Sequence record: MK250019.1
DNA: 64,000 bases
Direction: 5' to 3' (one strand)
The notes under the pieces are model-generated. The model was not told the origin of the DNA. It saw only the letters and a program-made list of their open reading frames with translations, and did no database searches. Both the position numbers and the translations under genes were made by a program. Position 1 is the first letter of the stretch. Every line of letters begins with the position of its first letter. Below are positions 2,014 to 62,916 of the stretch, one piece after another.

Positions 2014-2035
2014 TNNNNNNNNNNNNNNNNNNNNN

Positions 2036-8223: not shown

Positions 8224-9240
8224 TTACATGATATATTGTAAAAGCATTCTTGTTTCTTCATCTTGCCCGAGTTTTTTATTAGCCTCTCTCAAAATCTAAT
8301 TAACTCGTGTTTCTGTCATATTGTTTTCTTCTGCAATTTGCCAGGTATTTTTCTCTGGACGACCATTAATAGCGTAGCATGCACAAACAATTTCACCATT
8401 TCTTTTACCCATAACTCTCTTGATATTATCTTCAAGTTCTCTTGTTATATCTTCATTTTCAAGGTTACTTCCAGGCTCATTGAAAACATTATTTGTTGTC
8501 ATATCACCTAATGTTACTTTAGAATCTCCATCATCTCCAACAGATTGATCTAAACTATTTGCACGAGCATTTGCTTTCATCGTCTATACAAATGAATCAT
8601 AAGTTAAATTAGGGTGTTTCTTAACTAATACATCATAAATATCATCAATATCAGGTTCATAACCATTCTTATTAAATAAACGTTCTTTTACACGAGCAGC
8701 TTCACGAGCAATACTACCCATATTACGAGGAACTGCCATATGACCACCTACTTCATCAACTGCCATCATAATCTCTCGACGAATATACCAAATAGCATAT
8801 GATACAAATTTTACATCTTTTTCTGGTGTACTTGGATCATATGTTTCAGCTGCTTTCATAAGTCCAATATTACCATATTGAATTAAATCTTCTTTAGGAA
8901 TATTAAGATTTTTATACTTATTAACAACAGTAACAACAAACGGAAGATTTGCAGAAACTAATTTATTTTTTGCTGCCTCTACCTATCTCTTATTTGACGA
9001 ATGCTGAATAATATCTGCAAGTTTGCATTCATCTTCATGTGTTAATCTTTGTTTCTTATTAATTGCTTTTAAATATGCTACAAATGATTTTGCTGTATTT
9101 TCATCCTATGTAATAGTAAAATCATCATGTAAATCCATATGCATTCCATTATTATCTTCATTAAGAGTATTTCGTAATGAACGAGAAATACCTTCCATAA
9201 GGCTATTATACAATGCTTTCTTTTTATTAATTACTCTCAT
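8224..9240 (-). CDS. RNA polymerase sigma-70 family factor (338 aa, 4 TAG=Gln)
   Basis: Region 1.2 YLKAINKKQRLTHEDE; region 2 LVSANLPFVVTVV..DLIQYGNIGLMKAAETYD..KFVSYAIWYIRREI; region 4 HTH TWQIAEENNMTETRVN(Q)I. TAGs at 9106, 8983, 8584, 8296. Confidence 0.9.
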
Positions 9241-9331
9241 ATTTTATTTAATAAATTAATTTCAATAATTTATTATATTTATCAATATATAAAAATAGAG
9301 AATAGTTATCCCAACTATTCTCTATTATAAT

Positions 9332-9892
9332 TTAGTTATCCTGTACAATATTTAATATATGTTTAATCTTTTCTATATCATTATCTGTTATCCCTGTATA
9401 ATTATCAATGTGCACAAAATTATTCATTTGTTTGTCTAACATATCTTTATCATCATCTACAATACAATACTCTATATTTAAATTATCACTATTAAAAAAT
9501 TTTATATCATATAATGCAATATTATATGTTTGTGCACTTTTATCTAATACAATCGTTAAAAAATCATCTATTTCTTTTCCACGTGGTATATTATCTAAAT
9601 TTATATAATTTGGTGTTATTCCGACCATATATTTGTTTAAGGGTTTTAAATCTTTATATCGTTCAAATTCATGTTTTGTTGCTTCTAATGTAAATATTCT
9701 CCAAGATGATGATATAACTAATCTTACATTATACTTTTCACAAAGTTCTTTTATTTTAAAAACTGCTTTTTTATCGATAAAAATATCTCCTCCATTTTTT
9801 ATATATTCTTTTCCTTTATCATTTTCTGTACACCATATTGCATATTCTTCGGAATTTAAAACACCATCTATATCTAAAAATAAAAGTTTCAT
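9332..9892 (-). CDS. HAD-family protein (Swiss-Army-knife RNA-repair type)
   Basis: LFLDIDGVLNS, VISSSWR, YCIVDDD. Confidence 0.8.
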   Translation of the reverse strand: MKLLFLDIDGVLNSEEYAIWCTENDKGKEYIKNGGDIFIDKKAVFKIKELCEKYNVRLVISSSWRIFTLEATKHEFERYKDLKPLNKYMVGITPNYINLDNIPRGKEIDDFLTIVLDKSAQTYNIALYDIKFFNSDNLNIEYCIVDDDKDMLDKQMNNFVHIDNYTGITDNDIEKIKHILNIVQDN

Positions 9893-9916
9893 AATTTACA
9901 ATATATCTTATTTCAT

Positions 9917-10243
9917 TTAATCATCATCAAAATTATCATATATAGAAATTTTATTCTTTTTTCGTTCTTTCTGCTTTTCAATACACGGGAAACAGTATTC
10001 ACCAATACCTTTTATATATTTTTCATTTGTATATGTTGGTTCACCTTTAAAATTAAAATTTCGTTGTTCACCGTATGCAATATGTTTCTTCTTTTTCCAT
10101 TTAACAACTTTATCATGTTGTACTTCAATATCTCGAAGCTCTTTATATTTATTTTTTATTTTATATTTTTTATCGCCTTCTATAACAAAACTAGATGAAC
10201 CTTTTTTACTAATTTTATGTGACTGATGATAACTTCTAGACAT
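9917..10243 (-). CDS. Basic hypothetical protein
   Basis: 108-aa ORF within an operon. Confidence 0.65.
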   Translation of the reverse strand: MSRSYHQSHKISKKGSSSFVIEGDKKYKIKNKYKELRDIEVQHDKVVKWKKKKHIAYGEQRNFNFKGEPTYTNEKYIKGIGEYCFPCIEKQKERKKNKISIYDNFDDD

Positions 10244-10541
10244 CTTTTATATTATATATTTTATTTTTAAAATGTTTTAAAAAATCTTGATATTGCTCAT
10301 AATTTAATTCAATAAAATCATATTTTAATTTAAAATCAGTATTATTATTTGATAAACCATAATAAGAATCTGGTTGTTTATACAAAATCTGTTTATTGTA
10401 ATAAATTTTATATGTATCGTACATACGATTTGAATAACCAGTAGGCTTATATATTTCGACAGAAATAATACTACTTATCGGTATAATTTTACCATCTGAT
10501 GTACTAATATAATCATATTTTTTCTTTAATTTTATTGACAT
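10236..10541 (-). CDS. Hypothetical protein; ends at TAG, or 7 aa later at TAA 10215
   Basis: 101-aa ORF overlapping the next start. Confidence 0.65.
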   Translation of the reverse strand: MSIKLKKKYDYISTSDGKIIPISSIISVEIYKPTGYSNRMYDTYKIYYNKQILYKQPDSYYGLSNNNTDFKLKYDFIELNYEQYQDFLKHFKNKIYNIKDV

Positions 10542-10551
10542 ATTTTTTTAA

Positions 10552-10953
10552 TTAATATTCATCATCTATTTCATCACATAAATCTAAAAATTCCTCCTGT
10601 ATTGCATTATCCAAAATTTGAAATTCTCTGCGTTCGTTATATTCGTCTTCTGATTTAATCGCATCTGCCCAATCTGCATCAATATCATATACTTTTCTTG
10701 TATCTGTTGACATAACACGAATCATATTATGAATTTCTTTTTGCTTTCTGAATCCATAATCAGAAATATATCGTTCTACAAGAATTTCTTTTTTAAATAT
10801 AGGAATAATACAAATGAGTTTCGTATTCATTTCATCTTTCTCACATGAATGAATACCAGGAATCAACAATACAGACTTACCTGTTTCTACATTTATATTA
10901 TATGATGTATTACTGCGAAGAAATACAAGATCACCAATTTTAAATTCTGCCAT
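10552..10953 (-). CDS. Hypothetical protein
   Basis: 133-aa ORF after a promoter box. Confidence 0.7.
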   Translation of the reverse strand: MAEFKIGDLVFLRSNTSYNINVETGKSVLLIPGIHSCEKDEMNTKLICIIPIFKKEILVERYISDYGFRKQKEIHNMIRVMSTDTRKVYDIDADWADAIKSEDEYNERREFQILDNAIQEEFLDLCDEIDDEY

Positions 10954-10993
10954 AATTTTAATATCTTATTAATATTGTTTATTATTTACAATA

Positions 10994-11003
10994 CAAAGAT
11001 ACA
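10994..11003 (-). promoter_or_regulatory. TGTATCTTTG -7 box
   Basis: About 40 nt upstream of the ATG at 10953. Confidence 0.75.
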
Positions 11004-11107
11004 CATATTATTTGAATTAAAAAAATAAAAAAAGAAAAATCTTAATATATTATTTCTATAATAAGAATATATATATTAAGATTTAACGTTTTAAGCCTAT
11101 GAAATAG

Positions 11108-11208
11108 TAGATGTAGGGAGACTTGAACTCCCAAATTCCATACCTAGAATACCATGAAATAAACTCAAAATATTATTGAGTTGCGTTTACCCATTTCGCC
11201 ATACATCT
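11108..11208 (-). tRNA. Class II (Leu/Ser-like) tRNA-like gene with an abnormal 9-nt anticodon loop and 30-nt variable arm
   Basis: Acceptor AGATGTA/TACATCT; D arm GCGAAATGGGTAAACGC; T arm GGGAG-TTCAAGT-CTCCC; anticodon stem ACTCA/TGAGT around ATAATATTT. Confidence 0.65.
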
Positions 11209-11420
11209 ATAAAAAGGTAGTTTCTTATCCGAATGCAGTCTAACTACCAAACCTTGAGTATCACATTTCGTACGTTTCCCAGATATTGTGACATCTGCTT
11301 ACTATATTACTATAATAAGTTAATCCTTGAATCACTTAAACCTAATTTAATAGGGATACATGTCAATCCATGATTAAAAAGTCTTTAGCTTAACAATATT
11401 AAAAAATATCGCAAGGATTG

Positions 11421-11492
11421 CAGCCCTAATAAGATTCGAACTTATAACATCACAATTAAATATTATGTGCTCTACCATTGAGCTATAGGGCC
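11421..11492 (-). tRNA. tRNA-Lys(TTT)-like gene with A instead of U at position 33
   Basis: GGCCCTA/TAGGGCT; GCTC-AATGGTA-GAGC; CATAA-TATTTAA-TTGTG; ATAAG-TTCGAAT-CTTAT. Confidence 0.7.
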
Positions 11493-11579
11493 AAGGTCTT
11501 ATTTTAAATTTCCACGCAATAAGACCTTAGATTTTTGTAGATATGTGTTCATAGTACTTAAACTAATGCTTGTAAATAT

Positions 11580-11671
11580 ACTGACGTGTTAACCACTTCA
11601 CCAATCGCCCATATATATTGTTTTTTGCTTTAATTGAGGGCAATACGGGAATCGAACCCGTGTTGGTCAGT
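11580..11671 (-). tRNA. Candidate circularly permuted tRNA gene (3' half 11671-11637, 26-nt linker, 5' half 11610-11580)
   Basis: The halves complement each other in the acceptor (GGGCGAT/ATTGCCC) and anticodon (TCAGT/ACTGA) stems; canonical D and T arms. Confidence 0.7.
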
Positions 11672-11871
11672 AAAATTCATGATGTATCACGAATGAACTA
11701 TGACAATCTAACATTTACTGTAATACTAAAGCTCTTGACTCAATGCTAATGCTAAAATCTAGGATTTTGTTTATGCTAAATGTAATCAAGCTAATGCTTT
11801 AGTCAATTTACATTATTTATATATCAAACAATATACAAAGTCTATTTTTATTCTTAAAATAATTTCACTTA

Positions 11872-11879
11872 AATAAATA
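11872..11879 (+). promoter_or_regulatory. T4-late-like promoter AATAAATA
   Basis: About 30 nt upstream of the ATG at 11908. Confidence 0.45.
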
Positions 11880-11907
11880 TCATAAATGAAATAGTTATCG
11901 TAACTAA

Positions 11908-13125
11908 ATGAAAAAGAATAATTATCTATATGAAGAAATGATACAGGATATTTCTGTTATCGTTAAACATCGAATAAATGAAGCATATGATAATCAACTT
12001 CTTGAAGAATATGGTGCAAAAGATATATTTAATGATGTAATGAAAGAAGCTACAAAAGATGGAAAAATCTTTTATACACATCTTAAAAAATTTATTATTT
12101 ATGTTATCAAAAAACTTCAAGAAACAAATCAATATAAGCAAGCAGAAAAAATGATGAATGCATATGTTCAGAAAATATAGAAATATATAAATGAACATAA
12201 AAAGATTACACCTCGTCGTATGTTAAAAATTACAGTTACTGTATTAGCAATATATGGCGGTGTATCAATGGTATAGGATTGTAAATCACTAATAAAATCA
12301 CTACAAAATAATGTAGAAACATATGAGCAAACAGCAGAAGATATTCCAGATTTACAATAGGAAAATATTACTGTTGATGAACCAGAAAATTTTGTAGTCA
12401 ATGTAAAGGATGAAGCAAAATAGACATTAAGTGTTAAACATGTTTCATAGGAAGATATTAATAATTCTCCTGCAAATAAATTCGAACATGATAAGAATTT
12501 CAATTTTAAATCAAGTAACAGTGCACGTGAATTTATTAAAAAACATGAAATGCTTCTACTTTATCCTTATTATGCAAATGAAGCTGAAGAAAAACAAGGT
12601 AAAGTAACTATAGGTTATGGACATGTTGTATTAGAAACTGATGGTGCATTATATCAGCAAATACAACAATTAAAAAAGAAAGGTCTTATAAAGCAGTCAT
12701 TTACTCGTGATAAGAAAACAGGAAAACTTATATTAAATCCTAAACATTGTAAACCAATTATTACAAAAGTGCAAGCAAATAAATTATTCTTAAAAGATAT
12801 TAAGATAGCAGAAGATAGAGCATATAAAGCATTGCAAGATATGCCTACTGATGATGATAATGTTAAGTGCTATATGTTATATAATCAAAAAATAAGAGAT
12901 GGATTAACATCACTATGTTATAATGCTGGTAATCTTAAACATGATAAGTATTCATTTATAACAAAAGGACTTGCAAAATGTAGATATGATTATAAAAACC
13001 AGAAAATTAATCCAGGTGATTATAATGTATCATTCAGTTATTTTAAAAATATTAAAGATAATCCTAATAGAAGAAATGAAGAATATAAGTTATTCTTTAT
13101 GAATGCAAATAAATCAATGTCATAA
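11908..13125 (+). CDS. Lysozyme (GH24-like) fusion with N-terminal leader and hydrophobic segment (405 aa, 5 TAG)
   Basis: C-terminal REFIKKHE...TIGYGH...LTSLCYNAG...RRNEEYKLF; 1218 nt in frame. Confidence 0.8.
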
Positions 13126-13146
13126 AAATAAAAAAATATTAATATA

Positions 13147-14430
13147 ATGAAGAAATTATTTGAAGCAAAACAAAAACCATTAGTTGTTTATAATCCTGCT
13201 GATATATTTATGAAATATAATATGAAACCAGGAGATTATGTTTCTATTGCATATATATCAGACGTTTTACAAGGTGAATCAAGCCATCCTATTGCAAGAA
13301 GTGGTTCTCAAAAACAATGTTATAATATTAATGATGAAACAGATGCATAGTTAATGGAATATATTGACAACCTTCCTAATAATAGAATTAAACAATTATT
13401 AACAGAATTTAGAGAATCTAAGAAATATTAGGATTTTTTAAATGGTACCAGTAAATTAAAAACATGTAAATTAAATTTAACGACAGAACATATTATTAAA
13501 GTAAGTCATCTTACATGTAACTGGAAAGATTCAAAAGCATTGGCAAAATTCTATGATAAGTAGCGAGATGCTATTTGGAAACTCCGTCAAGATTATGGAT
13601 TTGAAGATGGTTTTGATGATAATTATGATAGAGATGAAGATGATGTAAACTGGAGAGATTCACATGATGGTAGAAATATAATGCCTCGTACAAAAAAGAA
13701 TTATAACGGTAATGTATATAAAGATGCTACTATCCTTCCTGGCATTTATGCAAGTCTTTCAGATCCTGATAAAGTTGCATTTAGATTCGCATATAATCAA
13801 AGATCTAGTCATAAAGATTCTGATTATTATTATGTAAATGGTGATGGAACATTATTTCCTTTAAATAAAGCATTCGTTACATTCTTAACATATGCATATA
13901 AGAAAAATAAAGAAGATGAAATTTATCCTACATAGGAAGAAAGAGAATTTGTTGCTAAACTTAAACAAATTACTGATGAAACTCCAAGTACAGCAGAAAT
14001 GACTCTTAGTTGTAATTAGATTTTATTTATGAAGTCAACTGCACGCACATCAAAGAACGCAAGAATTTCTCAAAATATTCCATTTGTATGGATTAATACA
14101 AAAGCAGTTGTCAATAAATATGATTTTATTAATCCAACTGAGTTAAATAACATTATTAAAAATCTTGTGTATTCACTTGATGATACTGATGTTAATGGTA
14201 CAATTGAAAATATCAATGTTAAAGGTAAATCAATAAGTGATCTTCTTAATATAGATATGTCTGGTAAAGCAACTGCTGATCCTGCAACTATTAGACAACG
14301 TTTAGGAATTACAGAAGCATTACATATGTTAGCATATAAATTTACACAAACAAAAAAGAAACGTGCATTATATGAATCAATTATGAAAAATGTTTCTAAA
14401 ACAATAAAAAGAAAATTACAATTAATCTAA
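13147..14430 (+). CDS. Hypothetical protein, probably virion-associated (427 aa, TAG=Gln)
   Basis: Three ORF-track fragments in one frame joined only by TAG codons. Confidence 0.75.
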
Positions 14431-14487: not shown

Positions 14488-15741
14488 TTAAAATCTAATA
14501 AATGAAACTACTTTTGCAGAAACATTAGGATCTGCAATCTTAAATACCTTATCAGGATTAACCTATAACATGATATTTGCATCACCTTTATCTGCAACAG
14601 AAGATGTCCAATATCTACCGGTACCGATAATATCCATTACTTTATTAAGTTCTGGTAATGTAGGAAGATATGCACGTTCAAAAATTTGTGATTTTACTTC
14701 ATTAACTTGTTCACTATTCAAACCATTTAATTGTAATTTCTTTATAGCCATTTGCTTTGCAAGTTTAGCAGCATTATTACCATTGTCTTCAAGAATACTT
14801 GTATAAAAATTTCCTTTAATTTCCTCTTGATAATAATAATTAGATCCTGGTGTAATCTCTAATTTCTATTTAGCACCAACTAGCTTTTTCTTAAAATAAT
14901 ATGAATCATATACATTATTATTTCCTGGATTACCCAATGTTGATTCCTATGAATCCAATATCATAAATACTGGTTTCTTATCTAATGACTAATAACTAGA
15001 AATAACACATTTAGCAAATGATCCCTATGCATCATTACTTAAAACTAAACCATCTACTTCATCCCATTTAATAAACATACCTTCATTTGCTTTTTTCAAA
15101 GAATTACCTACTGTTTTAAAATATGGTTTTAAATCTGCATATTTTTCACCAAATGGTTCATCTTCATCAATTTCATCCTCTATATCTTCATCATCTGAAT
15201 CTGATGTATCTACATCATCATAATCAGGATAATCTGCCTATGTAGTTTCTTCAGGTTCATCAACCTTTTTACTTACACTATCATCAAAGCCATGCGAAAC
15301 TATAGGTTTATCCTAAATATCTGGTTCATCTTCTATTGTATTATCATCTGTTTGCACATCATCATAATCAGGATAATCAGGTGTCTATACAGGTTCATCC
15401 TAAGAAATATTACCATCAAATTCACCACCATTTTCAACATATAATGTCTGAATATCTGCTATATTACCGCCTGCATCTATATATGCATTACCTATATTCT
15501 TATATGCTTTTAATTTATTAATATCTGCATTATTATGTGGACATCCAACCTTCATAGTAAGCAAACCAGCAACATATTTCTATAAAAGAACCTCTTTTGT
15601 ATCTTTCTTCATTACCTTTGCATCTTCACCTAATGTTGAACGCAAACGACTTGACATTGAACTCATTGAAGCCCAAATTTTTGGATCAATAGTTCTCTAT
15701 ACACGGGCTTCATTTAATATATCATTTATAAATGTTCTCAT
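14488..15741 (-). CDS. Hypothetical acidic protein with duplicated DYPDYDDV (417 aa, TAG=Gln)
   Basis: 1254 nt, ATG..TAA, interrupted only by TAG. Confidence 0.7.
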
Positions 15742-15870
15742 TTAAAATAAATCAATAATTATTTTATATATTTATTTTATTATAATTATTTATTATAACA
15801 TTATCATTTACCATAAAATTAAAGAGTATAACTTTTAAATTATACTCTTTATTCTTTATTTTGTTTTTAA

Positions 15871-16500
15871 TTATAAAATTGTTGTCCATGCTTCAAATAC
15901 TGCATCATCATATTCTTCATAAGGAATAGTAATATATCCATGATCTGCCCATGATGTTCCCCAGGAATTTCTAATAATAAAACCTTGCTTATTAAATCCA
16001 ATTACTAATGTACAATGCCCTCCTGCATAATTAGATCCTTTTCTCCAAAAATATGGATCGTTATCAGTATAAACTGGAAACCCCGCAGCTACCGGGCCAA
16101 ACATAATTAATGCACGTTTTAAAACTTCTCCTGATGGAACTAAAGCATATGAATTAATTTTTTCTCCGTTTAAACCATTAGTTTTAAGATATTTTAATGC
16201 TTCTTTTATAGACATGCCTTCCTATGGTTTATTTGAACGAGAATTATATAATGTATTAATAGAAAAATTATTACATTTACCATCAGTTCCTACTTTACTG
16301 TTATGAAGATAGTCAAGTACACCAGTTAATGATTGACATACACAAGTCTATGTATTACCCTAATCACGAACAGGAGGCATAACATCTCTTAAAGAAAATT
16401 CATCAGGTAATGGTATTTTTGAATCAACATTTACTATTTGTTCTGTACCATCTAATTTAGACGGAATGCAACCATAAAAATGTTTCTACTTATTATCCAT
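15871..16500 (-). CDS. Papain-like (C1) cysteine peptidase (209 aa, TAG=Gln)
   Basis: PVRD(TAG)GNT(TAG)TCV; GGHCTLVIGF; IIRNSWGTSW. Confidence 0.9.
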
Positions 16501-16546
16501 ATGTCATTAAATATATTTTATATATTTATTTTCTATATAATAAAAG

Positions 16547-16588: not shown

Positions 16589-18484
16589 TTAAGAGAAATC
16601 ACCACCGGTATCACCTCCACCAGTATCTGCAATTTCAGAACCACCAGATCCCATACCAGTATCACCACCAGAGAATGCTTCATCACCGCCAGAGAAGTCT
16701 CCTCCTCCACCGAAGTCACCTCCACCAGTATCACCTCCAGCGCCGAATGAATCATCAAATCCTGAACCTCCAGAATCACCACCGAAATCCATTTCGCCTG
16801 GTGCACCGTTACCTTGCTGCTCACCAACTTGCTTACCTATTTCTTGATGTTGTTTAATTGTTTTGGCTTGCTCTAATCGTTCAATAATTTCGCCTTGCTT
16901 ATATTTTTCATTAAGTGCAAAATCTTCATCAGACATACCTAGAAATTTCTCAATAAGGAATTTCATACTAAAGAATGGTTTATTTTCACCTAATTGAATT
17001 TGTGCTAAAGTACCTATAATTTCAGCACCCTATTTTAATGCTGTTCTTTCTTTTGCTTTAACAAATAAGTTTTCCTCATTGAATACAATACCTATACATT
17101 GTTTAAGCAATTCAGAATTAGCTAATTCTGGCATCATTAAACATATTTGCACCCATAAAGGTTTTAACAAAATTTCACGATACATAACGCGAATACGACT
17201 AATAAATCTACTAAATGCATATTCCTCTCGTGTTATACTTGCATCATCTCCACCTAATGGATGTGCGCCATCAGCAGCAGGATCAATCATAAATCTATTT
17301 GCTGGAACTTTTGTTTCTAATATAAAACGTCTCCAGAAATATTTCAATGGTGTAATATCACTTAAGTCATAACCTTCTGTAGGTATTTCTTCTATTGTCA
17401 TCGAATTACCATCACGAATTGGGAAAAAATGAGTTTTAGAAAATGAAAAACGTGGTTGACCATTTACAACCATTTCACCAGATATTTCATCGACTGTTGT
17501 TTCTTCATTCCAATCTGCTTTTACTTCATTAACCTTTGCACGAGCTTTGTCCTATGAAATATTACCTACAGGAATACCCACTTTAACACGTTTCTGTGAA
17601 TTCATAATATTCCAAACCATTCTTGATGTTTCAAGTTGTGTTAACATTGTATATGATCTGATTAATCCTTCTAGATAAGAAACTCGTGAATTTTCGCCAT
17701 ACATACCTGTTGACCATGATATATATACAATATTCGAATCTGGTATTTTTCTTTCCAACTATGCATCACCTCTATATTGATACCATACTTTTACTTCTTT
17801 TCCTGTTTCTGGATCTATTTCAATATCAGGTTCAAGAGTTGCTGCATCCAATTCTCTCATGCCTATAATACGTGTAGGTTTCATAAGATTATCAACAACA
17901 ATTTCAAATGCCAAATATCCTTCAACTAAGAATTTTTTAAAATAATTCCATGCATCATTTGATTTATCCCATCCATATGTAGAATATATAATCTTAAATG
18001 CTTTTTGACAATTTTTAATTAAATCATCTGCAGTTTCACCATTTGCACCTTTATAATTAGTGTTAAACTTTAATTTCAGAAGATTTAAATCTAACTATGC
18101 AAAATAATTGTTTTCATCTAATATTATAGTTTCATCTGAAATAGTATCAAGAACAAAAGAAATTGTTTGTTGTGAAGCGAACTATCTTAACTATTCACGT
18201 CTCTATTGATATGATAAATCATAATATGCATAAGATTGTTTTGTATTTTTAGTAATATCAACATACTATGAAAAAGAATTTTGATCCTAATTTAAACCAT
18301 CGTTAAATGGATATAATGAATCACCTGTATAATTATTTGTTTGAGCGGAACCTAAAGCTAATGATGTTTTAAGAATACTCTATGATGAATTTAAACTGAG
18401 AGAAGACAGATTAATAAGTGTATTGATTTTATTATGATCTGCTTTTCCTGGATTAAACTTTCTTGCTATATATTTTGTAGGCAT
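16589..18484 (-). CDS. T4 gp20-like portal protein (631 aa, TAG=Gln) with Gly/Asp-rich tail
   Basis: RVSYLEGLIRSYTML, KRVKVGIPVGNIS(Q)DKA, FFPIRDG..IEEIP, LKYFWRRFILETKVPANRF, ITREEYAFSRFISRIR follow the gp20 pattern; 1896 nt in frame. Confidence 0.85.
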
Positions 18485-18605
18485 TATTATGCTTTTATTT
18501 AGTTTTTATATTTATTATATATAAAAATAGGTAATATGTTTATGAAAAATACATATTACCTATCAAACAAAATTAAACAATTAAATATATATATTATGAA
18601 AAATG

Positions 18606-18997
18606 TGGAGACATCCGGAGTCGAACCGGAGTATTACTAACTTGTCAATAATAAACTATCTACGTGCGTATTTCTTAATTAGTTTTCATCATACATTCTT
18701 AGGAGTTAAACAGTTTAATGTCTTAATCACTCTTATTGGACAAAAAGTATAGTGAGTTTTATTTAACAGAGAAAACACTCACCGAACTCCGTGGCGATGC
18801 TCAACTTACCTTGTAAGGAGCAAATGCTTCAATGGGTTTATATTACCAATCCTACCGGATTAAGCTGCCATACGAAAATCAATTTCGTCGTCATTTAAAT
18901 TTATTTGCTAAATTTCTTTGTATTACTACAAAAGGCTTTTAACTTTCCTACACGATTTATTATCACATAATTAATAAGCAAAACCAAAAATGTCCCC
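18606..18997 (-). ncRNA. ssrA: tmRNA (one-piece), tag about (A)DDEIDFRMAA*
   Basis: GGGGACA/TGTCTCC acceptor with G3.U70; T arm CCGG-TTCGACT-CCGG; internal GAC GAC GAA ATT GAT TTT CGT ATG GCA GCT TAA. Confidence 0.9.
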
Positions 18998-20828: not shown

Positions 20829-20866
20829 AATTGTAAAAAATTAAAAATATTACTAATGTCATGTCG

Positions 20867-20938
20867 TTGGGGATCCGAGACTCGAACTCGGCCTAAGAGT
20901 TTTAGAGACTCCTGTACTGACCACTATACTAATCCCCA
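20867..20938 (-). tRNA. Amber-suppressor tRNA, anticodon CUA, Gln-type body
   Basis: TGGGGAT/ATCCCCA (U1-A72, G2-C71, G3-C70); GGAGT-CT CTA AA-ACTCT; CCGAG-TTCGAGT-CTCGG. Confidence 0.95.
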
Positions 20939-21739: not shown

Positions 21740-21771
21740 AATAATTTTTAATATTTAATAACCATATTTTG

Positions 21772-21845
21772 TAGCCCCACTCAGATTCGAACTGAGTCAG
21801 CGAAAGTTAGAGTTTCGAATACTTAAACCATTACATCATAGGGCA
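21772..21845 (-). tRNA. Second amber-suppressor tRNA, anticodon CUA, Gln-type body
   Basis: TGCCCTA/TGGGGCT (1:72 mismatch); CGAAA-CT CTA AC-TTTCG; CTCAG-TTCGAAT-CTGAG. Confidence 0.93.
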
Positions 21846-29609: not shown

Positions 29610-29996
29610 TTAAAATGAATGTATATTATTATCAAGACTTGTCATTTCAGATGCTTTAAATTTACCATAAATCTTATTCCATCCTTTTGATAAACCGTTA
29701 CATAACATACTGGTATAATATGCAAATGGATTACTAAATCGTTCTGGATCAAAGCTTCGCCAATACATTGCAACATCCAACATTGCTGTCTGTATACAAT
29801 CTTCCTTATCCTCTTGACATTTATAATGTTTCTTTTTTGCTAAATTTTCAGCAATTAACTAAAGCATGACAACAGCATTATATGTAAGTTCATCTCTCTA
29901 TTTTGAAAGAACTATTTCTTTCATTAACTCTTTATTCTACACATATGGTTTTCCACCTTTAGTTTTAATACCTTCTACTTTACTAAAATCTTCCAT
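29610..29996 (-). CDS. T4 gp55-like late-transcription sigma factor (128 aa, TAG at codons 20, 33, 46)
   Basis: PYV(Q)NKELMKEI, ML(Q)LIAENLAKK and SFDPERFSNPFAYYTSMLCNG parallel gp55 YVNNKEL, MLIAEGLSKR and [21 protein letters not shown]. Confidence 0.8.
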
Positions 29997-30060
29997 GGTT
30001 TTTAAATAAAAATAGCTATTTCTTATTTTACTAAGAAATAGCTAAAAAGTTTTAATAAAT

Positions 30061-31146
30061 TTATTTATTAATTGCTTCCAAATGTTCCTTTTCATTAGGT
30101 GTTAAATTATCAGGAATCAAATAATGTACGCATACAAAATAATCTCCTCTTTGATTCATATCAGGTCGTTTAAGACCTTCACCAGATAATCGCATAACTG
30201 TACCTTCTTTAATACAACTCTGTAACTTTATTGTTTTTGATACACCAGAAGGTATATTAACTGTATATGAACAACCAAGTAATAGTTTATAATAAGGTAC
30301 ATGAATATGCTCTATTACATTCAAACCATCAACTTGATATTTGTTTGTATCAAATTTATAATCAGCTATAGCAATAAAATTACCATTCTGCCCAACTGAT
30401 TTCTTTGATTCTGATCCTTTACCACTATATACTTTATATTCACCATTCTGAATGCCTGTATTAAATTCAATTTCAATCTTTACTTCTTGCTTTTCAAATC
30501 CAGAACCACCACAATGATTACATTTATTTTCTACATAGAAACCTGTTCCATGACATAATGGACAAATTTCTTCTTGAATTGAAAATGTTCCTCTTCCTAT
30601 AAGAGACTGGTGAATAATTTTTCCTGCACCATGACACTTTGGACATGTTTTCTGCCCAGTTCCACCGGCACCATGACATGACGGACAACGTACATCTCTC
30701 TTATATTTAACAACCTTCTTAATACCATTAAATATATCTTCAATAGTAACAGGAATTTTCATTTGAATATCTCTGCCTGGTTGAACTTGATTTCTCTGTT
30801 GTTTAGCACCTCCAAAACCGCTAAATCCTCCAAATGGATTAAATCCTCCAAATGGGTCAAAACCCGATCCACCAAATGGATCAAAACCTGAACCACCAAA
30901 TGGATTTTGCTGACCATTTTCATCACCATATGTATCATAATTCTGTTTCTTCTGTGGATCACTCAATACTTCATATGCATGATTCACATCCTTAAATTTC
31001 TCTTCAGCTTCTTTTACTTCAGATGGTGATTTACCTTTCTGCATATCAGGATGATATTTCTTTGAAAGTTTTCTATATGCTGTCTTTAAGTCTTTCTCAT
31101 TACAATCTCTAGAAACACCTAAAATTTCGTATAAGTCTTTTGCCAT
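30061..31146 (-). CDS. dnaJ: Chaperone DnaJ
   Basis: J domain with HPD, G/F repeats, four CxxCxGxG zinc-finger motifs. Confidence 0.97.
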   Translation of the reverse strand: MAKDLYEILGVSRDCNEKDLKTAYRKLSKKYHPDMQKGKSPSEVKEAEEKFKDVNHAYEVLSDPQKKQNYDTYGDENGQQNPFGGSGFDPFGGSGFDPFGGFNPFGGFSGFGGAKQQRNQVQPGRDIQMKIPVTIEDIFNGIKKVVKYKRDVRCPSCHGAGGTGQKTCPKCHGAGKIIHQSLIGRGTFSIQEEICPLCHGTGFYVENKCNHCGGSGFEKQEVKIEIEFNTGIQNGEYKVYSGKGSESKKSVGQNGNFIAIADYKFDTNKYQVDGLNVIEHIHVPYYKLLLGCSYTVNIPSGVSKTIKLQSCIKEGTVMRLSGEGLKRPDMNQRGDYFVCVHYLIPDNLTPNEKEHLEAINK

Positions 31147-33429: not shown

Positions 33430-34437
33430 TTATAAATTGTCTATTTTTCTAATAATTTTTTCTAATTTTATTTTCATATCATTTATATTAATAGGAAATA
33501 TTTCATAATAATTTAATTTATTATTAATAGCAATATTTCTTTTATTAACATCTCTATATCTCCAATTATATGCTGCATTTTTATAATAGTCTGATTTATT
33601 CATCCATTTATTAAATAAATTTATATCATCTAAATCGTTTTCATTAAATGGATGTTTTCCATGTGTCCAACTTGCATTAATTTCTATATATGTATTTTTA
33701 TCTTCAATATAAAAATCACAATTAAATGGATATTCTTCAGATTTATATTGTCTTATTACTTTATTATAATGTTCAATTAATATATTATATGCAATATCTT
33801 CATATTTAGATGTATTAAATGTATTATTACGTTCTTTTGTTTTATTTGATTTATTTTTAATATCATCTAATTGAAATACATTGTTTATATTAGAACCATA
33901 TTTATTATGTAATGTTTTTAAGACTTTATCTTTATTTAAAAATGCATATTCATAACCTGTTTTAGTTTTAATTGTATTACGAATTTTATCTCTTATTTCT
34001 TTTCGTTGTAAATTATAATTAACATTATAATTTTTTTGATTAGATAATTTACAATTAGATATTGATTTTTCTTTAATTAAGTCATTTTTCATAGGATTAT
34101 CAACTCCATACTTTTTTAAACAAGTATCCTTTTGTTTTCTTAATGTAATTTGTTTTCCTTTATCAGAATATTTACAATTATTAGAACAAAATGTTTTATA
34201 TCCTAATGAAAATCTTTCTAACTTTATTTCTTTATGACATATAGGACATAAAGGTCTATTGCTTAAATGATAAAGAATCATATAGAGACATTCTGATAAC
34301 TTTATATTTTCGATATGTTTAAATTTATCTTTTATATAAAGTTGATCTTCTGTATCTATATGATTCCAATATTGACAATTATTTTTAATAGAATTATTTT
34401 CTATATATTTTGATATTATCTAATTATCTTTATTCAT
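33430..34437 (-). mobile_element. Putative homing endonuclease: Zn-ribbon, KYGV repeat, C-terminal PD-(D/E)xK-like domain (335 aa; TAG at codon 6)
   Basis: CPICHKE..TFCSNNC, CLKKYGVDNP, YPFNCDFYIEDKNTYIEINASWTHG; start extended to the ATG at 34437. Confidence 0.7.
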
Positions 34438-35303
34438 TTCAATAATTTAGGTTTATTCCTTGCATTTCTTAAATTCATATCCATATAGCCTCCCATTGCC
34501 CAACGTCCTCTTGGTTCCATTTCTTCTAAAACTTCCATACGTCTTACACATATCGATTTCCAAAAATCTGTTGCTTCTTGTACTCTACTTCTCTTTCTAT
34601 CTTTAAATGACGTTCCTTCATAATCGGTCCAATATCTTTGTGGAGCATCAGTATTTTCGATACCTTCTTTTCTATTATTCACTTTTAATGCATTATTAGG
34701 AATAAATGAAAAAGCTTTATTACCGATACGTGACATAAAATTAGAAGCAGAACCTGGTTTCAATTTACTTTCATCACCTTTTTTATGATAACCAGGATAT
34801 GTAGCATCATTTGTTCCTATAAGATAACCATATGTTTTATCTTTTGGTTTATAATAAATTGAATCTTGATTAAAATATTCAGCTAAAGATAAAAGATTAT
34901 TTAAGAAATTAGGATCATTAAATCTATTTACAACAAAAAAACTTTCCTCTGATGACTCATTATTCATTCCTTCTGGATATATTCCTTTTACGGTAGTTAC
35001 ACCATACTTTAAGTTTAATAATTCTGCTTTTAATAATTTATTTTTTTCTCGATTTTCTTCATGAGTAAATATTTTTTTGTCCACCCAATTATCATTTGGT
35101 CCATAATAAGTTTTATCTGGATTTGCAATGTCAATTAACTTATATCTAAATGCAGTAATAAATGCACAATCACATTTATTTAACCATAACATCATACGGT
35201 TAAGTGATTTTTCATTTAACTCATTATTATATATTGCTATATTATTGAAATTATCAACTTCTTCTAATAATTTCTTTTTTATTGCATCATCAAAGTTATT
35301 CAT
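34434..35303 (-). CDS. Hypothetical protein
   Basis: 289-aa ORF; TATAAATA at 35322-35329 upstream. Confidence 0.8.
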   Translation of the reverse strand: MNNFDDAIKKKLLEEVDNFNNIAIYNNELNEKSLNRMMLWLNKCDCAFITAFRYKLIDIANPDKTYYGPNDNWVDKKIFTHEENREKNKLLKAELLNLKYGVTTVKGIYPEGMNNESSEESFFVVNRFNDPNFLNNLLSLAEYFNQDSIYYKPKDKTYGYLIGTNDATYPGYHKKGDESKLKPGSASNFMSRIGNKAFSFIPNNALKVNNRKEGIENTDAPQRYWTDYEGTSFKDRKRSRVQEATDFWKSICVRRMEVLEEMEPRGRWAMGGYMDMNLRNARNKPKLLK

Positions 35304-41612: not shown

Positions 41613-42851
41613 TTATTGTTTATTAATCCATTCTTTTACTTCATTAATATTCCAAAATTCTATATAATTCAAATTATTCTACTATGATATATTCCTTTTT
41701 TTCAAATCTAATATAGTCCATGTATAAATAATATTATCATATTGTGACTTCTTACCATTTTTATGTGCATTAGAATTTTCTGCTTTTTCTTTTAAGTTAT
41801 TCAGCTCATTTAAATCATATTCATTATTTTCATTAAATGGATGATAATGATGATAATGAGATCCGTTATATTCAATATATAAATCTAATGATGGTATATA
41901 AAAATCACAATTAAATGGATACAATTCTGATTTATATTGTCTAATACAATCTGAATATTTTTCTTTTAATAAATCAAAACATACATCTTCTTGATATGAT
42001 ATATTAAATGAATTATTTAATAATTTTGTATTATAAATTTTTTTCTATATTTCATTACTACTTAATATAGATGAAATTAAATTTTTATAGTATTGTGTCT
42101 ANNNNNNNNNNNNNNNNNNNNNCTTTTCTAAACATGTATTTTTTATTTTATCTTTTACATATTTAAGTTGACCAATATTTACGATACTATTAATATCATC
42201 TTCATTAGAAGCATATTTTTTAATACATGTATCTAATGACTAATTTCGAAATTTTTGAACTTTAAATACAGAATCAACACCATACTTTTCTAAACATGCT
42301 TTATGAGTTTTTTCTATTTTTTCAGGAATCTAACCTGTATACTCAACACCATATTTTTGTAAACATGTTTCTTTTGATTTTTGTTTAAATATTTCAGATT
42401 TTAAAGGGGATGTTACTCCATATCTTTGTAAACATGTTTCTCTTGCTTTAATTCTATTAGAATAATGTTCATCTCCATATTTTAATAAACATGTTTCTCT
42501 TATTTTATTATTAATCTATTGCTTTTTATCTACATCACTATATATGTCTTTTAATACTTTTTTAACTGTTATACCATCTAACATATTTGCATGTTCTTTA
42601 CAACATGTTTTATTAAATAATTGATTCTTTTTACCATTCAAAAATTTAACAGGTTTTCCACAAATAACACATACAGGGCGAACCTCTATATTATACTGTA
42701 TTCTCTTAATTGTTTCTCTTAATGACTATGAATCAGTATAGCGATTATCTAAATATTCCTTATACTCCTCAGAAATATTAGTTAATCGCTATACATTTAC
42801 ATGTCCATTAGATTTAATAAAATAATCTAATATAATCTAATCTGTTACCAT
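41613..42851 (-). mobile_element. Putative homing endonuclease, paralog of 33430-34437, with tandem CLxKYGV repeats; spans an N gap; TAG=Gln
   Basis: MVTD(TAG)IILDY..., CVICGKP, repeated TCLQ(R/K)YGV, YPFNCDFYIPSLDLYIEYNGSHYH. Confidence 0.7.
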
Positions 42852-45240: not shown

Positions 45241-46719
45241 TTATATATTAAATTTAAAATTATCTATTTTATCTGTTATATTTGTTATATTACAACCATT
45301 TTTTTCTAAAAGTTCTTTTGCAGATTGATATACTTTACTGTAATCTTGTTCTACAAAAGTACGTAAACTTGTGAATCTGAATTTTAAACTATCAATTTCC
45401 TATGCTATTACTTCATGAGAAACACCCGATTTATTTTTTCTATCAATATATTTCTAATATTGTTCTATTACTGAAATTGATAAATCTATGCATCGTTGTA
45501 CTTTTAAATTTAATATTATTAAACAATCTGCAATTGATTTAAATGAAAATACAAGTTGATCATAATGTCCTCTACCGTATGGTCTACGTTCTCGAGTAGT
45601 AAATAATAAAGATGTATCACTACCATATGTTTGTCTTATCATACTTGCATAAATACCATCACAATTTACTTGATTCCAATAACTTACTAGTTTAAATTCA
45701 TCAAATTTTTTATTTGTTAATATATCATTATCTAAATCCTGTAATTCCATATTAACATCAAAACATATATCCATAAAGTTATTAACGTTTTTTATAACTT
45801 TTGAATCTAAACTTTCCTGCTTCCTGACTTTTAATATTTGTCTATAACGTTCTATATTTTTCTTATTTAAATTAGTCTATGAAAGTACGAAATCTCTATA
45901 TTCACGTCGATTATTTAATTTATTTGTTATGTCAATATTATCCATATATTTTGGATCAACAACATAAACTTTTGTTATAGCTGTTATTTTCTGTAATGAC
46001 TTTATATTATCAGCGCCTAATTCTTTTTTTATATCAGAAGAAGATGTCAAAACATCATATACAGGAATCTTTGTAAATGCTTTATTTACAAAATCTTCAA
46101 CTTTCTTTGAATCTGTTGCAAAATAAGTTATATCTGTTTTTTCATTATAATTTTTATTTGGTTCCAACCAAGAATTATAAGGATTTGCAGATGTAATATA
46201 TAATATAATTTTATTATCTATTGTTACTGCTCTTAATTGATCTTCATAATCTACCCAAAACTATATACCGCTTTTATATATTTTTTTCTTTGCTTCTTCT
46301 GGTGTTATTGTTAATAACTGTGTATCTGTAATATCTGATATACCTAAATTATGATCAGCTTTTGCTTTAAGCATACGATTAATAATACCAATAATAGTAT
46401 TATCTATATATGAACCATCCCATTGTTTAGTTTTCTATTTTTTCGTATATGTACATTTAATAACAGACTATCTTCCTTCAACTGTATCACACATTTCCTA
46501 TGTTAATTTACCTTTAGATGCTAGTCTATCATATTTCATAACAACATAAAAAAAATCTGCTCCTTCATTTCGTTTCATATATCCTTCATCTCTACATGGA
46601 CTTAATGTTAAATTAGATCTGTCAAATTTATGTAGTAAAGATGAAAGTGTTACTGAATTTAATGATTCATTTATATGTTTTAATTTTTTTGCTATATATA
46701 AAACTTCACTTAATAACAT
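45241..46719 (-). CDS. Hypothetical protein (492 aa, TAG=Gln)
   Basis: Three track fragments in one frame; AATAAATA at 46749-46756. Confidence 0.65.
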
Positions 46720-48522: not shown

Positions 48523-49039
48523 TTCACAAAAGTAAGTAAAATAATTACTGGTAATTTGAGAATGATAGAATATATAGATTTTTGATTAGTGAAATTTTGA
48601 TTAGTTAATATTATTTAGAATTTGTATAAATTAACATAAAAATAATATTGATTATCAATCAGTTATAAATTATTTTTTAACATTTATTAAAAATATTTAG
48701 AAAAATGTAGACTTTTTCTTAAAACNNNNNNNNNNNNNNNNNNNNNNNNNNNNNNNTTGAGATAGATATTATACATAATATGTAAAAAAATTAAATATAT
48801 TTTTTAATAATTTAATAAGGTAAGCCTTTCGGAAATGTAAATATATTTTGAATATGGTATAGAAATATTTTTTATTTTTATATCATATTTTTATTTTATA
48901 GTATATAAAACATTATTAATAATTATTAGTAAAATATATGATAAAGTTTTATATTTACTTATTATAATTACTTTAATTTGATATGTTATATTTTTACTAA
49001 ATAAATAAGTAAATGAAAATCTTTATTTGATAAAAAGAT

Positions 49040-50020
49040 ATGAATAATGGTTTAAAAGAATAGTTACATGATATATCTATTCGAACAATGATCGGATAGC
49101 TTCCAAAAATTATTAATGATAATAATACAAAGATTTGTGATTATATTGATAAGATATATGATTCATCAAATGTATGTATAACTGTTAATATTGATAATGT
49201 ATCAGATAATAAATCATATGTTAAATCTAATTTAGGTTAGTTTAAAAAACTTATTGTAGAAGATTTTGAAACAAAAAATATAAAAAGTTTAGAACAAGTT
49301 ATTAGATCAGGTGGTTCTAATAATGAAGGTATAAATCATGATGCATTAAACGGTCGTTATCTTTATAATGATGGTGGATTATTGAAAACAGTTCCATATG
49401 ATAAAATATCTCCTGATATGAATAAGTATGCACATAATTCTGGTGCTATAGGTGTTACATTAGGAAATGGTACTGTTTAGTCATTAGCAGATACATTAGA
49501 ATAGATTATTAATAGTGTCGATAGTTTAAAGAAACAATTTAGTTAGAGTTATTCAGAAGATGAAGGATATATTGGATTATATGGTGCAATTAATAATATA
49601 AATAATCAGTCAGTAAATAATTCAAATTCATTCACTTTTGATTAGAGTTTATTATTTGCTACTAAATTATAGTTAAAAAGAATGAATTTACCATAGTATC
49701 AATATAATGATATTACTCAGGGTTTTATTTATACATATTATGATTATGCAAATACTGTTACTATAAATGATGAGAATACTTCATCTATAAAAGGAATTCC
49801 TGGTTCTATTGTTAAATTAAGATTTAATGATACTAAATCAAAAGGGTTTTATAGAGTTATATTATCAAGAGAAGAAAAGAAATTTTTACGAATATCAAAA
49901 GATGAATTAAATAGAATTACATTAAAGTGTATTAGTAATGATGAACAATTTGGAGCATCATGGGATGTATTGGATTATTCTGTTCGTTCTGCTGATGATA
50001 TTATGATTGAAAGAAAATAA
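49040..50020 (+). CDS. Putative structural protein (326 aa, about 9 TAG)
   Basis: 981 nt ATG..TAA; absent from the ORF track; AATAAATA at 49000-49007. Confidence 0.75.
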
Positions 50021-50040
50021 AATTATTAGTTTAAGAAATT

Positions 50041-51912: not shown

Positions 51913-51920
51913 TATTTAAA

Positions 51921-54179: not shown

Positions 54180-54281
54180 TATAAAAATAATATAAAATTA
54201 AAGAGATATTACATAATTCAAAAAGTAATATCTCTTTTTTAGTTTAATAAATAATGAAACGAATTTGATTTAAGGATACAA

Positions 54282-61781: not shown

Positions 61782-61786
61782 AAAGT

Positions 61787-62914: not shown

Positions 62915-62916
62915 AA

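Follow-up and report, generated by a model that had tools for sequence, protein, structure and literature searches.

A shared leader of 20–25 residues (KKALYESIMxxVSKxVKKxLNE) is present on 14 proteins of Prevotella phage Lak-A2, among them a sigma70-family protein and a lysozyme-like fusion, and in 12 of the 14 it directly follows the start methionine. Apart from one family of paralogs, the carriers share no other homology. The DNA analysed, referred to here as the window, is a 64,000-nt stretch (MK250019.1, 124001-188000) that is 99.9% identical to Lak-A2, a 541-kb megaphage that reads TAG as a sense codon, modelled here as Gln. The recoding is shown by the genome itself: ORFs of 150 aa or more cover 28.5 kb of the window under table 11 and 51.4 kb when TAG is read through. 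Two tRNAs with anticodon CUA are also encoded on the minus strand. The suppressor tRNA at 20866-20938 was found by ARAGORN and scores 60.5 bits against the Rfam tRNA family, whereas the one at 21771-21845 is predicted by ARAGORN only and does not exceed the Rfam gathering score.

A first-pass annotation of the window had reported a leader with identical spacing on three proteins, and that observation is confirmed. Under TAG=Q the sigma70 gene (8224-9240, minus strand) begins MRVINKKKALYNSLMEGISRSLRNTLNE, the lysozyme fusion (11908-13125, plus strand) begins MKKNNYLYEEMIQDISVIVKHRINE, and the protein encoded at 13147-14430 (plus strand) ends KRALYESIMKNVSKTIKRKLQLI. The spacing LY-x6-(I/V)S-x6-(L/I) is the same in all three. 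In the six-frame translation of the window, the core LY..[LIMV][MILV]..[IVL]S lies inside real ORFs only at these three places.

The sigma70-family gene encodes 338 aa and has four in-frame TAG codons. Its product matches Pfam Sigma70_r2 at 47.6 bits and Sigma70_r3 at 28.3 bits, both above cut-off, and region 4 at 16 bits, below cut-off; it also matches the sigma factor family phrog_351 (E 2e-43) and is 98.8% identical to Lak-A2. The leader, here called leader A, occupies residues 1-28 (9157-9240, minus strand) and scores 37.1 bits with a motif HMM. In 121 homologs L10, Y11, L14, M15, I18, S19, L22, L26, N27 and E28 are conserved, while G17, R20, R23 and T25 vary. A promoter-like box, ATAAATAT, lies at 9275-9282 (minus strand), 42 nt upstream of the start codon. 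The leader-bearing sigma is an accessory gene that was found only in Lak-A/B/C; a leaderless, TAG-free sigma is the one found in the two distant relatives in which a sigma was detected.

The lysozyme fusion (405 aa, five TAG codons) consists of the leader (11908-11982, plus strand; 35.3 bits), a helical region, a hydrophobic stretch around residues 105-122, as judged by eye, and a lysozyme-like C-terminus. The last scores 22.0 bits against Pfam Phage_lysozyme (PF00959), just under the cut-off of 22.3, and matches the endolysin family phrog_7 at E 2.4e-7. The leader is conserved in Lak-B1 as MNKNYNKLYEEMMSDISVIVKKKINE, and a ATAAATAT box lies at 11873-11880 (plus strand), 35 nt upstream of the start codon. 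The protein encoded at 13147-14430 (427 aa, five TAG codons) has no significant Pfam or PHROG family. Its copy of leader A is C-terminal (14359-14427, plus strand; 35.6 bits) and is followed directly by the stop codon. This copy ends QLI, not NE, and is conserved in that form, including the KRKLQLI ending, in Lak-B1 and in a clade whose ortholog is ~69% identical (L004), so it cannot be an N-terminal propeptide cut at LNE.

The first-pass annotation had proposed that the motif be compared with shuffled controls across the whole genome, and it proves to be far beyond chance. In the complete Lak-A2 genome the motif HMM gives 14 hits of 30.7-45.1 bits, and the next best is 8.3 bits; the best scores in 20 shuffled proteomes are 3.6-9.2 bits. 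A profile built from the three window copies alone recovers seven further proteins elsewhere in the genome at 18.6-42.9 bits. Ten of the 14 copies end LNE or INE, the others ending VKE, LYE, IEE and QLI, and most carriers have no Pfam or PHROG family. One copy is internal, at residue 283 of a 491-aa ORF, though it is preceded by Met. A profile search of 1.84 billion representative proteins matched 1081 clusters at E<=1e-3, and the contexts checked are mostly Lak-like phages. Of the best 150 hits, 129 start within 15 residues of the N-terminus, and at the end of the leader L/I is present in 98%, N in 93% and E in 100%. After the leader the sequences diverge and are enriched in acidic residues. 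Conservation is at the protein level: copies share 41% amino-acid and 55% nucleotide identity, and 39% of identical residues use different codons. Within the 121 sigma homologs the hydrophobic face and LNE are conserved, while several other leader positions vary.

Bare (L/I)NE motifs, which the first-pass annotation had listed as shorter leaders on three further proteins, are weaker evidence. [LI]NE occurs in the first 40 residues of 48 of 567 proteins, against about 21 (sd 4) expected; the excess is real, but roughly half of single cases are chance. ILNEA, on the gene at 14488-15741 (minus strand; 417 aa, 11 TAG codons), is supported by paralogy. The gene belongs to a four-member family whose other members (g_26125, g_429338 and g_467370) share the N-terminal ~110 aa at 35-59% identity, and the NE of its short leader, MRTFINDILNE (15709-15741, minus strand), aligns with the NE of the full leader A on g_26125. 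The short leader is conserved in Lak-B1 as MRTFKNNILNE, and a ATAAATAT box lies at 15768-15775 (minus strand), 34 nt upstream of the gene. In contrast, ELNEK at 34434-35303 lies in a SAM-lyase gene with no TAG codon and no promoter box and is best read as chance. HINES at 45241-46719 has no support from the HMM or the promoter box, and only near-identical relatives were found.

The first-pass annotation inferred that these are late, amber-containing proteins that are packaged in the head by a capsid-targeting signal, matured at xNE and injected. That interpretation is partly supported, since several independent but circumstantial lines agree with it. Lak-A2 has a T4-type head module. Its protease matches the gp21 family (Peptidase_S77, PF03420) at 57.6 bits against a cut-off of 27 and phrog_207 at E 5.6e-33, and aligns to T4 gp21 (PDB 5JBL) at E 1.6e-4. 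The capsid protein, of gp23 type, matches PF07068. The portal gene, beside the leader genes at 16589-18484 (minus strand), matches PF07230 (Portal_T4) at 195 bits, contains 10 TAG codons and has a ATAAATAT box at 18508-18515. In 18 Lak-like capsid proteins (58-100% identical) LNE (17) or VNE (1) is conserved at residue ~62-64, just before a variable stretch, and in Lak-A2 it is the last Glu before the conserved core; T4 gp23 loses a 65-residue propeptide (PMC5694885). The protease has LNE at residues 19-21, as T4 gp21 has LIE-9 (PMC9026906), and INE, LNE and INE at residues 178, 190 and 226, at the end of the protease domain and before an acidic linker. C-terminal autoprocessing is known in this family (PMC5694885). 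That these sites in the Lak proteins are actually cut is inferred.

Late co-expression of the leader genes with the head genes is plausible from sequence alone. Leader genes contain TAG in 22 of 29 cases, against 192 of 538 for other genes (p 3.5e-5), and have ATAAATAT upstream, at about -30 to -40, in 17 of 29 cases, against 58 of 538 (p 3e-9). The box sits mostly 21-40 nt before the ATG (62 of 84 occurrences), resembles the T4 late promoter TATAAATA, and also precedes the portal and protease genes. Recoded stops are reported as over-represented in structural and lysis genes (PMC10879173).

These features suggest, with no more than moderate confidence, that leader A (consensus M-x2-6-KKALYESIMK(D/S)V(S/A)KTVK(K/R)xLNE) is a portable targeting peptide of the Lak megaphage lineage that works like the capsid targeting sequences (CTS) of phage T4. 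In this view, leader-tagged proteins would be made together with the head proteins late in infection, when suppressor tRNA allows TAG-containing genes to be translated. The invariant face of the leader helix (L-Y..I-M..V..V..L) would dock them to a component of the prohead core, and the shell would assemble around them. The gp21-family protease would then cut after the Glu of (L/I)-N-E, releasing the leader and leaving the mature cargo in the head, to be ejected with the DNA. Cargo in the window would be an accessory sigma70, the lysozyme fusion with its hydrophobic segment, and the short-leader paralog at 14488-15741, while the protein at 13147-14430 would carry the same docking helix uncleavably at its C-terminus. 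The analysis establishes the motif family, its N-terminal position and protein-level conservation, the T4-type head genes, the conserved LNE of the capsid protein, and the statistical link to TAG codons and to the ATAAATAT box; docking, packaging, cleavage at LNE, ejection and any role of the sigma factor in the next infection are inferred. The further suggestion of the first-pass annotation, that a virion-delivered sigma70 would start the next infection without needing suppression, is consistent with the data but is an inference on top of an inference.

Several findings do not fit this reading well. Direct evidence is absent, as a literature search found no cultured Lak phage and no virion proteome or N-terminal data for one. 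Besides the C-terminal and internal copies in Lak-A2, about 5% of the best database hits are internal or tandem. One such protein (P0094) is a genuine table-11 ORF on a 35%-GC contig that shares only the leader with Lak-A2, and it lies next to an IS1595 transposase, so the motif is not strictly tied to Lak capsids. [LI]NE is not depleted in the bodies of leader-bearing proteins (11 observed against 8 expected), and smaller relatives (G006, about 190 kb) keep LNE in the capsid protein but have no leader A. The capsid-targeting reading nevertheless remains the best-supported explanation that could be found.

A less likely alternative is that the leader is a docking helix for a hub other than the capsid, such as a phage replication or transcription compartment, a chaperone, or a protease adaptor (degron), which brings many unrelated phage proteins to one place or one fate inside the infected cell. 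The same sequence-specific, portable, mostly N-terminal helix would be expected for any shared receptor, the C-terminal, internal and tandem copies fit a docking module better than a cleaved propeptide, and the motif occurs on the contig that shares only the leader with Lak-A2. However, this reading does not explain why the leader ends in the same (L/I)NE that is conserved at the expected capsid-protein propeptide boundary and at the domain edges of the protease, nor why leader genes share TAG codons and the promoter-like box with head genes, and no candidate hub was identified.

It is unlikely that the leader is a cationic amphipathic helix that attaches proteins to the host inner membrane, as membrane-targeting sequences do, although this could be relevant to lysis or envelope proteins such as the lysozyme fusion with its hydrophobic stretch. 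The hydrophobic moment is 0.41-0.49 for the consensus, the sigma copy and the C-terminal copy, exceeding 96-99% of shuffles (p 0.01-0.04), with net charge up to +4, but it is 0.26 in the lysozyme copy, no different from shuffles (p 0.33). Membrane-binding helices are normally degenerate in sequence, whereas L-Y-E-S-I-M and N-E are nearly invariant across more than 100 protein families, and a sigma factor has no obvious reason to be membrane-bound. Least likely is conservation at the nucleic-acid level, as a repeated 5' gene cassette (promoter, translation-initiation region, first codons) or a recombination handle that shuffles variable gene bodies, with no function for the peptide itself: the box does lie at a fixed distance upstream, leader genes are hypervariable ORFans and T-even internal-protein loci are also hypervariable (PMC3012670), but the low nucleotide identity and differing codons, the agreement of fixed and varying residues with a helical face, and the conservation of a C-terminal copy across clades argue against it.

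A second N-terminal leader, leader B (MNKxIKKL(L/I)E(S/N)LFDDxDD), was found elsewhere in the Lak-A2 genome on 12-14 unrelated proteins (28-36 bits; shuffles reach 8 at most), with no copy in the window. It also contains (L/I)-x-E, and hybrids of leaders A and B exist (g_275008, g_468872), but it is shorter and is followed by an acidic run instead of the long helix. It loosely resembles the N-terminus of T4 Alt (MELITELFDED), a protein known to be packaged and processed, although the resemblance rests on about six residues and may be chance. The giant phages phiKZ, 201phi2-1 and SPN3US also have a diverged gp21-type protease (gp175/gp245) that cuts after Glu in a short motif and autoprocesses at its C-terminus, and many of their head-internal proteins, including virion RNA polymerase subunits, are processed (PMC5694885). 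Their motif is (S/A/G)-x-E, and their propeptides are long, often over 100 residues, and are not a single conserved leader, whereas Lak has (L/I)-N-E with one stereotyped leader.

The closest parallel is with the CTSs of the T4 internal proteins IPI, IPII, IPIII and Alt, which are removed by the prohead protease gp21. These are N-terminal propeptides of 10-19 residues shared by otherwise divergent internal proteins, and they can carry foreign proteins into heads (PMC3012670, PMC9026906). In both phages the peptides are short, are shared by otherwise unrelated, fast-evolving proteins and end in hydrophobic-x-Glu, and both phages encode a gp21-family protease, a gp20-type portal and a gp23-type capsid protein with an N-terminal propeptide of about 65 residues, which in Lak is inferred. 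Packaging and cleavage are proven in T4 and are inferred by analogy in Lak. By sequence leader A is not a T4 CTS but an analogue or a distant variant, as it is ~25 residues long and has no significant similarity to MKTYQEFIAE; if the capsid-targeting reading is right, such a form of the signal would be new. Leader A is also much more strongly conserved across clades than the T4 sequences, occurs 9-14 times per genome, sometimes at the C-terminus, internally or in tandem, and has a sigma70-family protein among its putative cargo.

The window is 26% G+C and corresponds to positions 124001-188000 of MK250019.1, to which it aligns at 99.9-100%. Its reading frames are broken by TAG only. Reading TAG through raises the total length of ORFs of 150 aa or more from 28.5 kb to 51.4 kb. 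Two tRNAs with anticodon CUA are predicted by ARAGORN on the minus strand at 20866-20938 and 21771-21845; the first scores 60.5 bits against the Rfam tRNA model, but the second does not reach the Rfam gathering score. A phage-encoded tmRNA (18603-18997, minus), found by both ARAGORN and Rfam (RF00023, 58.2 bits) and having the tag peptide DDEIDFRMAA, lies just downstream of the portal gene (16589-18484, minus), about 1.9 kb from the nearer suppressor tRNA. For the genome-wide analyses, 567 non-overlapping ORFs were called in the whole 541,299-bp genome of Prevotella phage Lak-A2 with TAG read as Gln. The three masked runs of N in the window (2015-2035, 42102-42122 and 48726-48756) were left as they are.

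The first-pass annotation had claimed that a sigma70, a lysozyme and a neighboring protein share a leader, and this observation is confirmed. The sigma70-family gene (8224-9240, minus), whose product is 98.8% identical to that of Lak-A2, starts MRVINKKKALYNSLMEGISRSLRNTLNE. The lysozyme fusion (11908-13125, plus), whose C-terminus is lysozyme-like, starts MKKNNYLYEEMIQDISVIVKHRINE, and the protein encoded at 13147-14430 (plus) ends KRALYESIMKNVSKTIKRKLQLI. The spacing is identical in all three. These copies are the window's share of a genome-wide family that is much larger than was first seen. A motif HMM finds 14 proteins in Lak-A2 at 30.7-45.1 bits, the next hit scores 8.3 bits, and 20 shuffled proteomes never exceed 9.2 bits. 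A profile made from the three window copies alone recovers seven more proteins at 18.6-42.9 bits. Twelve copies follow the start Met directly, although in three cases this is a Met a few codons inside the called ORF. One copy is C-terminal (13147-14430), and one lies at residue 283 of a 491-aa ORF, again preceded by Met. In that copy the codon before LY is TAG, so the leader is intact only when TAG is read as Gln. A possible fourth copy in the window, at residues 22-40 of the product of 14488-15741 (minus; IWASMSSMSSRLRSTLGED), resembles the sigma leader but was rejected, because it is part of the conserved body of a four-paralog family and is not detected by the HMM.

The conservation is in the peptide and not in the DNA. 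The copies share 41% amino acid and 55% nucleotide identity, and 39% of the identical residues are encoded by different codons. Among 121 homologs of the sigma protein, L10, Y11, L14, M15, I18, S19, L22, L26, N27 and E28 are conserved, while G17, R20, R23 and T25 vary. Between Lak-A2 and Lak-B1 the sigma leader has changed at about half its positions, yet it has moved closer to the consensus (KKALYESIMKSVSKTIRKKLNE), and the residues that follow it are nearly identical. Synteny with Lak-B1 ends after 14488-15741.

Among 50,697 GenBank phage records, a 35-residue leader query matches only the 15 Lak genomes, at 6-9 places each. A leader profile searched against 1.84 billion representative proteins gives 1081 clusters at E≤1e-3. 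In the best 150 of these, the core L-Y-E-S-I-M and the final L/I-N-E are 93-100% conserved, 129 start within 15 residues of the N-terminus, the median protein length is 113 aa, and the sequence after NE is variable and acid-rich. The genomic contexts that were checked are mostly Lak-like. Other Lak-like genomes hold 14 copies (G002, whose orthologs are ~97-98% identical), 13, 13 and 9 copies, the last three having capsid proteins that are 71%, 63% and 61% identical. Two smaller relatives of ~190 kb, with capsid proteins 58-59% identical, hold none. Neither a keyword search of two Lak papers nor a full-text search for the motif strings turned up an earlier description of the motif.

Lak-A2 has a T4-type head module. 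The portal, encoded by the window gene at 16589-18484, matches PF07230 at 195 bits, and the capsid protein matches PF07068. A prohead protease (Lak-A2 109754-111508, minus, 12.5 kb before the start of the window) matches PF03420 at 57.6 bits and phrog_207 at E 6e-33, and aligns to T4 gp21 (PDB 5JBL). T4 gp21 cuts after Glu in a hydrophobic-x-Glu motif, and a change of this Glu to Asp blocks T4 processing. It removes a 65-residue propeptide from gp23 and capsid targeting sequences of 10-19 residues from the internal proteins and Alt; these sequences are conserved on otherwise divergent proteins and suffice to package foreign proteins (PMC3012670, PMC5694885, PMC9026906). In 18 Lak-like capsid proteins that are 58-100% identical, LNE (17) or VNE (1) is conserved at residue ~62-64, directly before a stretch of variable length. 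In Lak-A2 it is the last Glu before the conserved core, and a cut after it would leave a capsid protein that starts at Asp65. A phmmer search of the capsid protein against PDB found nothing, and the position of the T4 cleavage site relative to the Lak LNE therefore rests on length and conservation, not on an alignment. Most of these capsid proteins also have (I/L)NE-AW about 35 residues earlier.

The Lak protease is a 584-aa polyprotein with a protease domain at residues ~22-200, a ~150-residue highly acidic linker and a C-terminal helical domain; the C-terminal part may be a scaffold. A helical leader-bearing protein is encoded next to it (Lak-A2 115846-117096). It has LNE at residues 19-21, where T4 gp21 has LIE-9, and INE, LNE and INE at 178, 190 and 226, at the end of the protease domain and before the acidic linker. 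That is four sites in 584 residues, where about 0.7 are expected at the genome-wide rate. C-terminal autoprocessing is a known feature of this protease family. A papain-family cysteine peptidase (15871-16500, minus; PF00112, 45 bits; 4 TAG codons) lies directly beside the portal gene and could be a second head- or virion-associated protease.

Leader genes of types A and B (leader A is the one described above, leader B a second family described below), taken together with the paralog family, contain in-frame TAG in 22 of 29 cases, against 192 of 538 for other genes (p 3.5e-5). They carry the octamer ATAAATAT upstream in 17 of 29 cases, against 58 of 538 (p 3e-9). The octamer sits mostly 21-40 nt before the start codon (62 of 84 occurrences). 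Genome-wide it precedes 77 genes and is linked to TAG-containing genes (54 of 77 against 160 of 490, p 8e-10), and it precedes the portal, the protease and several very large TAG-rich ORFs of unknown function. In the window it lies 29-42 nt upstream of the start codons of the sigma gene (9275-9282), the lysozyme fusion (11873-11880), 14488-15741 (15768-15775), the papain-like peptidase (16522-16529) and the portal (18508-18515). It resembles the T4 late promoter TATAAATA and is a candidate late promoter on sequence grounds alone. Recoded stop codons are reported to be over-represented in structural and lysis genes (PMC10879173). The window also ends in a run of large TAG-rich ORFs (49040-63999, plus) of 326, 623, 752, 2499, 375 and more than 361 aa, with 3-26 TAG codons each and no Pfam family, which are presumably virion or tail proteins.

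Lak-A2 has three sigma-like genes. The gene at 8224-9240 has the leader, four TAG codons and the octamer; a cut after the leader would leave a mature sigma that starts at Asp29. A second gene (Lak-A2 219155-220105), encoding a 316-aa protein, has none of these, and it is the one with orthologs in the two distant relatives (G003 and G006) where a sigma gene was detected. A third, small gene (window 29610-30095, minus) encodes a region-2-only protein and has 4 TAG codons. The leader-bearing sigma was found only in Lak-A, B and C and was not found in more distant Lak-like genomes. It therefore behaves like variable cargo rather than core transcription machinery, which fits delivery in the virion but does not show it.

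Three shorter leaders had also been proposed. [LI]NE occurs within the first 40 residues in 48 of 567 proteins, against about 21 (sd 4) expected, and about 16 of the 48 are leader A or its paralog family. ILNEA (14488-15741) is supported, since the gene belongs to a four-member family in which one member has the full leader and the NE aligns in all four. ELNEK (34434-35303, minus) is in a gene for an S-adenosylmethionine lyase family protein (PF23780, 43.5 bits) with no TAG codon and no octamer; it is read as chance, and the gene is likely an early anti-restriction gene and not a leader carrier. HINES (45241-46719) has no support. Searches for orthologs of the HINES and ELNEK genes found only relatives 96-100% identical, which are too close for conservation to be judged.

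The proposal that the leader is a capsid-targeting propeptide, so that its carriers are packaged in the head, matured at NE and injected, is partly supported. It is the best available explanation and is favored by several independent but indirect lines of evidence, and it is considered somewhat more likely than not. The motif family, its conservation as a peptide, the T4-type head genes and the association with TAG codons and the octamer are shown by the sequence analysis, whereas late expression, packaging, cleavage at (L/I)NE and injection are inferred. Some observations do not fit. The C-terminal copy on 13147-14430 ends QLI and is conserved in that form in Lak-B1 and in the sequence labeled L004, where the ortholog is ~69% identical. 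It may act as an uncleaved docking helix; T4 Alt is processed at both ends, but this remains an analogy. Avoidance of cleavage sites would predict that [LI]NE is avoided inside cargo bodies, and this is not seen (11 observed against 8.1 expected), which is neutral to slightly negative. About 5% of the best database hits are internal or tandem copies. One of these, protein P0094 (231-1337 of contig L067), is an uninterrupted ORF under table 11 on a 35%-GC contig next to an IS1595 transposase, and it shares only the leader with Lak-A2. P0094 and its relatives P0136, P0142, P0102, P0059 and P0015 have a shared ~215-aa N-terminal domain, an Asn-rich linker, then Met plus leader A, then variable C-termini. 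The N-terminal domain has no Pfam family and no relative in GTDB species genomes. This is an unexplained use of the leader, apparently outside Lak. A plain membrane helix is argued against by amphipathicity that is moderate and absent in the lysozyme copy, although this says nothing about the docking partner.

A further and more tentative possibility is that Lak megaphages mark their injected proteome with one stereotyped, cleavable leader. In this view about 14 A-type and 13 B-type cargo proteins per genome, and more than 1000 protein families across the lineage, would be packaged in the head. Among them would be an accessory sigma70 that is delivered with the DNA and redirects host RNA polymerase at the start of the next infection, before the TAG-suppression system of the phage is running. 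A packaged sigma factor has not, so far as is known, been described for any phage. Lak phages are among the largest known phages, are common in human and animal guts and have never been cultured, and most of their genes have no known function. A portable leader that marks head-packaged proteins would predict the injected proteome of this uncultured lineage from sequence alone, and that proteome would hold likely anti-defense and host-takeover factors, spread over more than 1000 protein clusters. A pre-made sigma factor delivered with the genome would also point to a new takeover strategy, and it would fit a phage whose late genes cannot be translated until its suppressor tRNA is expressed.

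Leader B lies elsewhere in the Lak-A2 genome, where 12-14 unrelated proteins (for example MK250019.1 105455-106153, 113970-115355, 493587-494636 and 524037-525200) start with MNKxIKKL(L/I)E(S/N)LFDDxDD. They score 28-36 bits, while shuffled sequences reach 8.1 at most, and two proteins combine both leaders. The N-terminus of the packaged T4 protein Alt, read from AF158101, is MELITELFDED; the likeness (L-hydrophobic-x-x-L-F-D-acid-D) is suggestive but short. If the capsid-targeting reading is right, leader A would be a previously undescribed form of the T4-type capsid targeting sequence, in an uncultured megaphage lineage and with a sigma factor among its cargo, and it could also serve as a protein-packaging tag, as the T4 sequence does.
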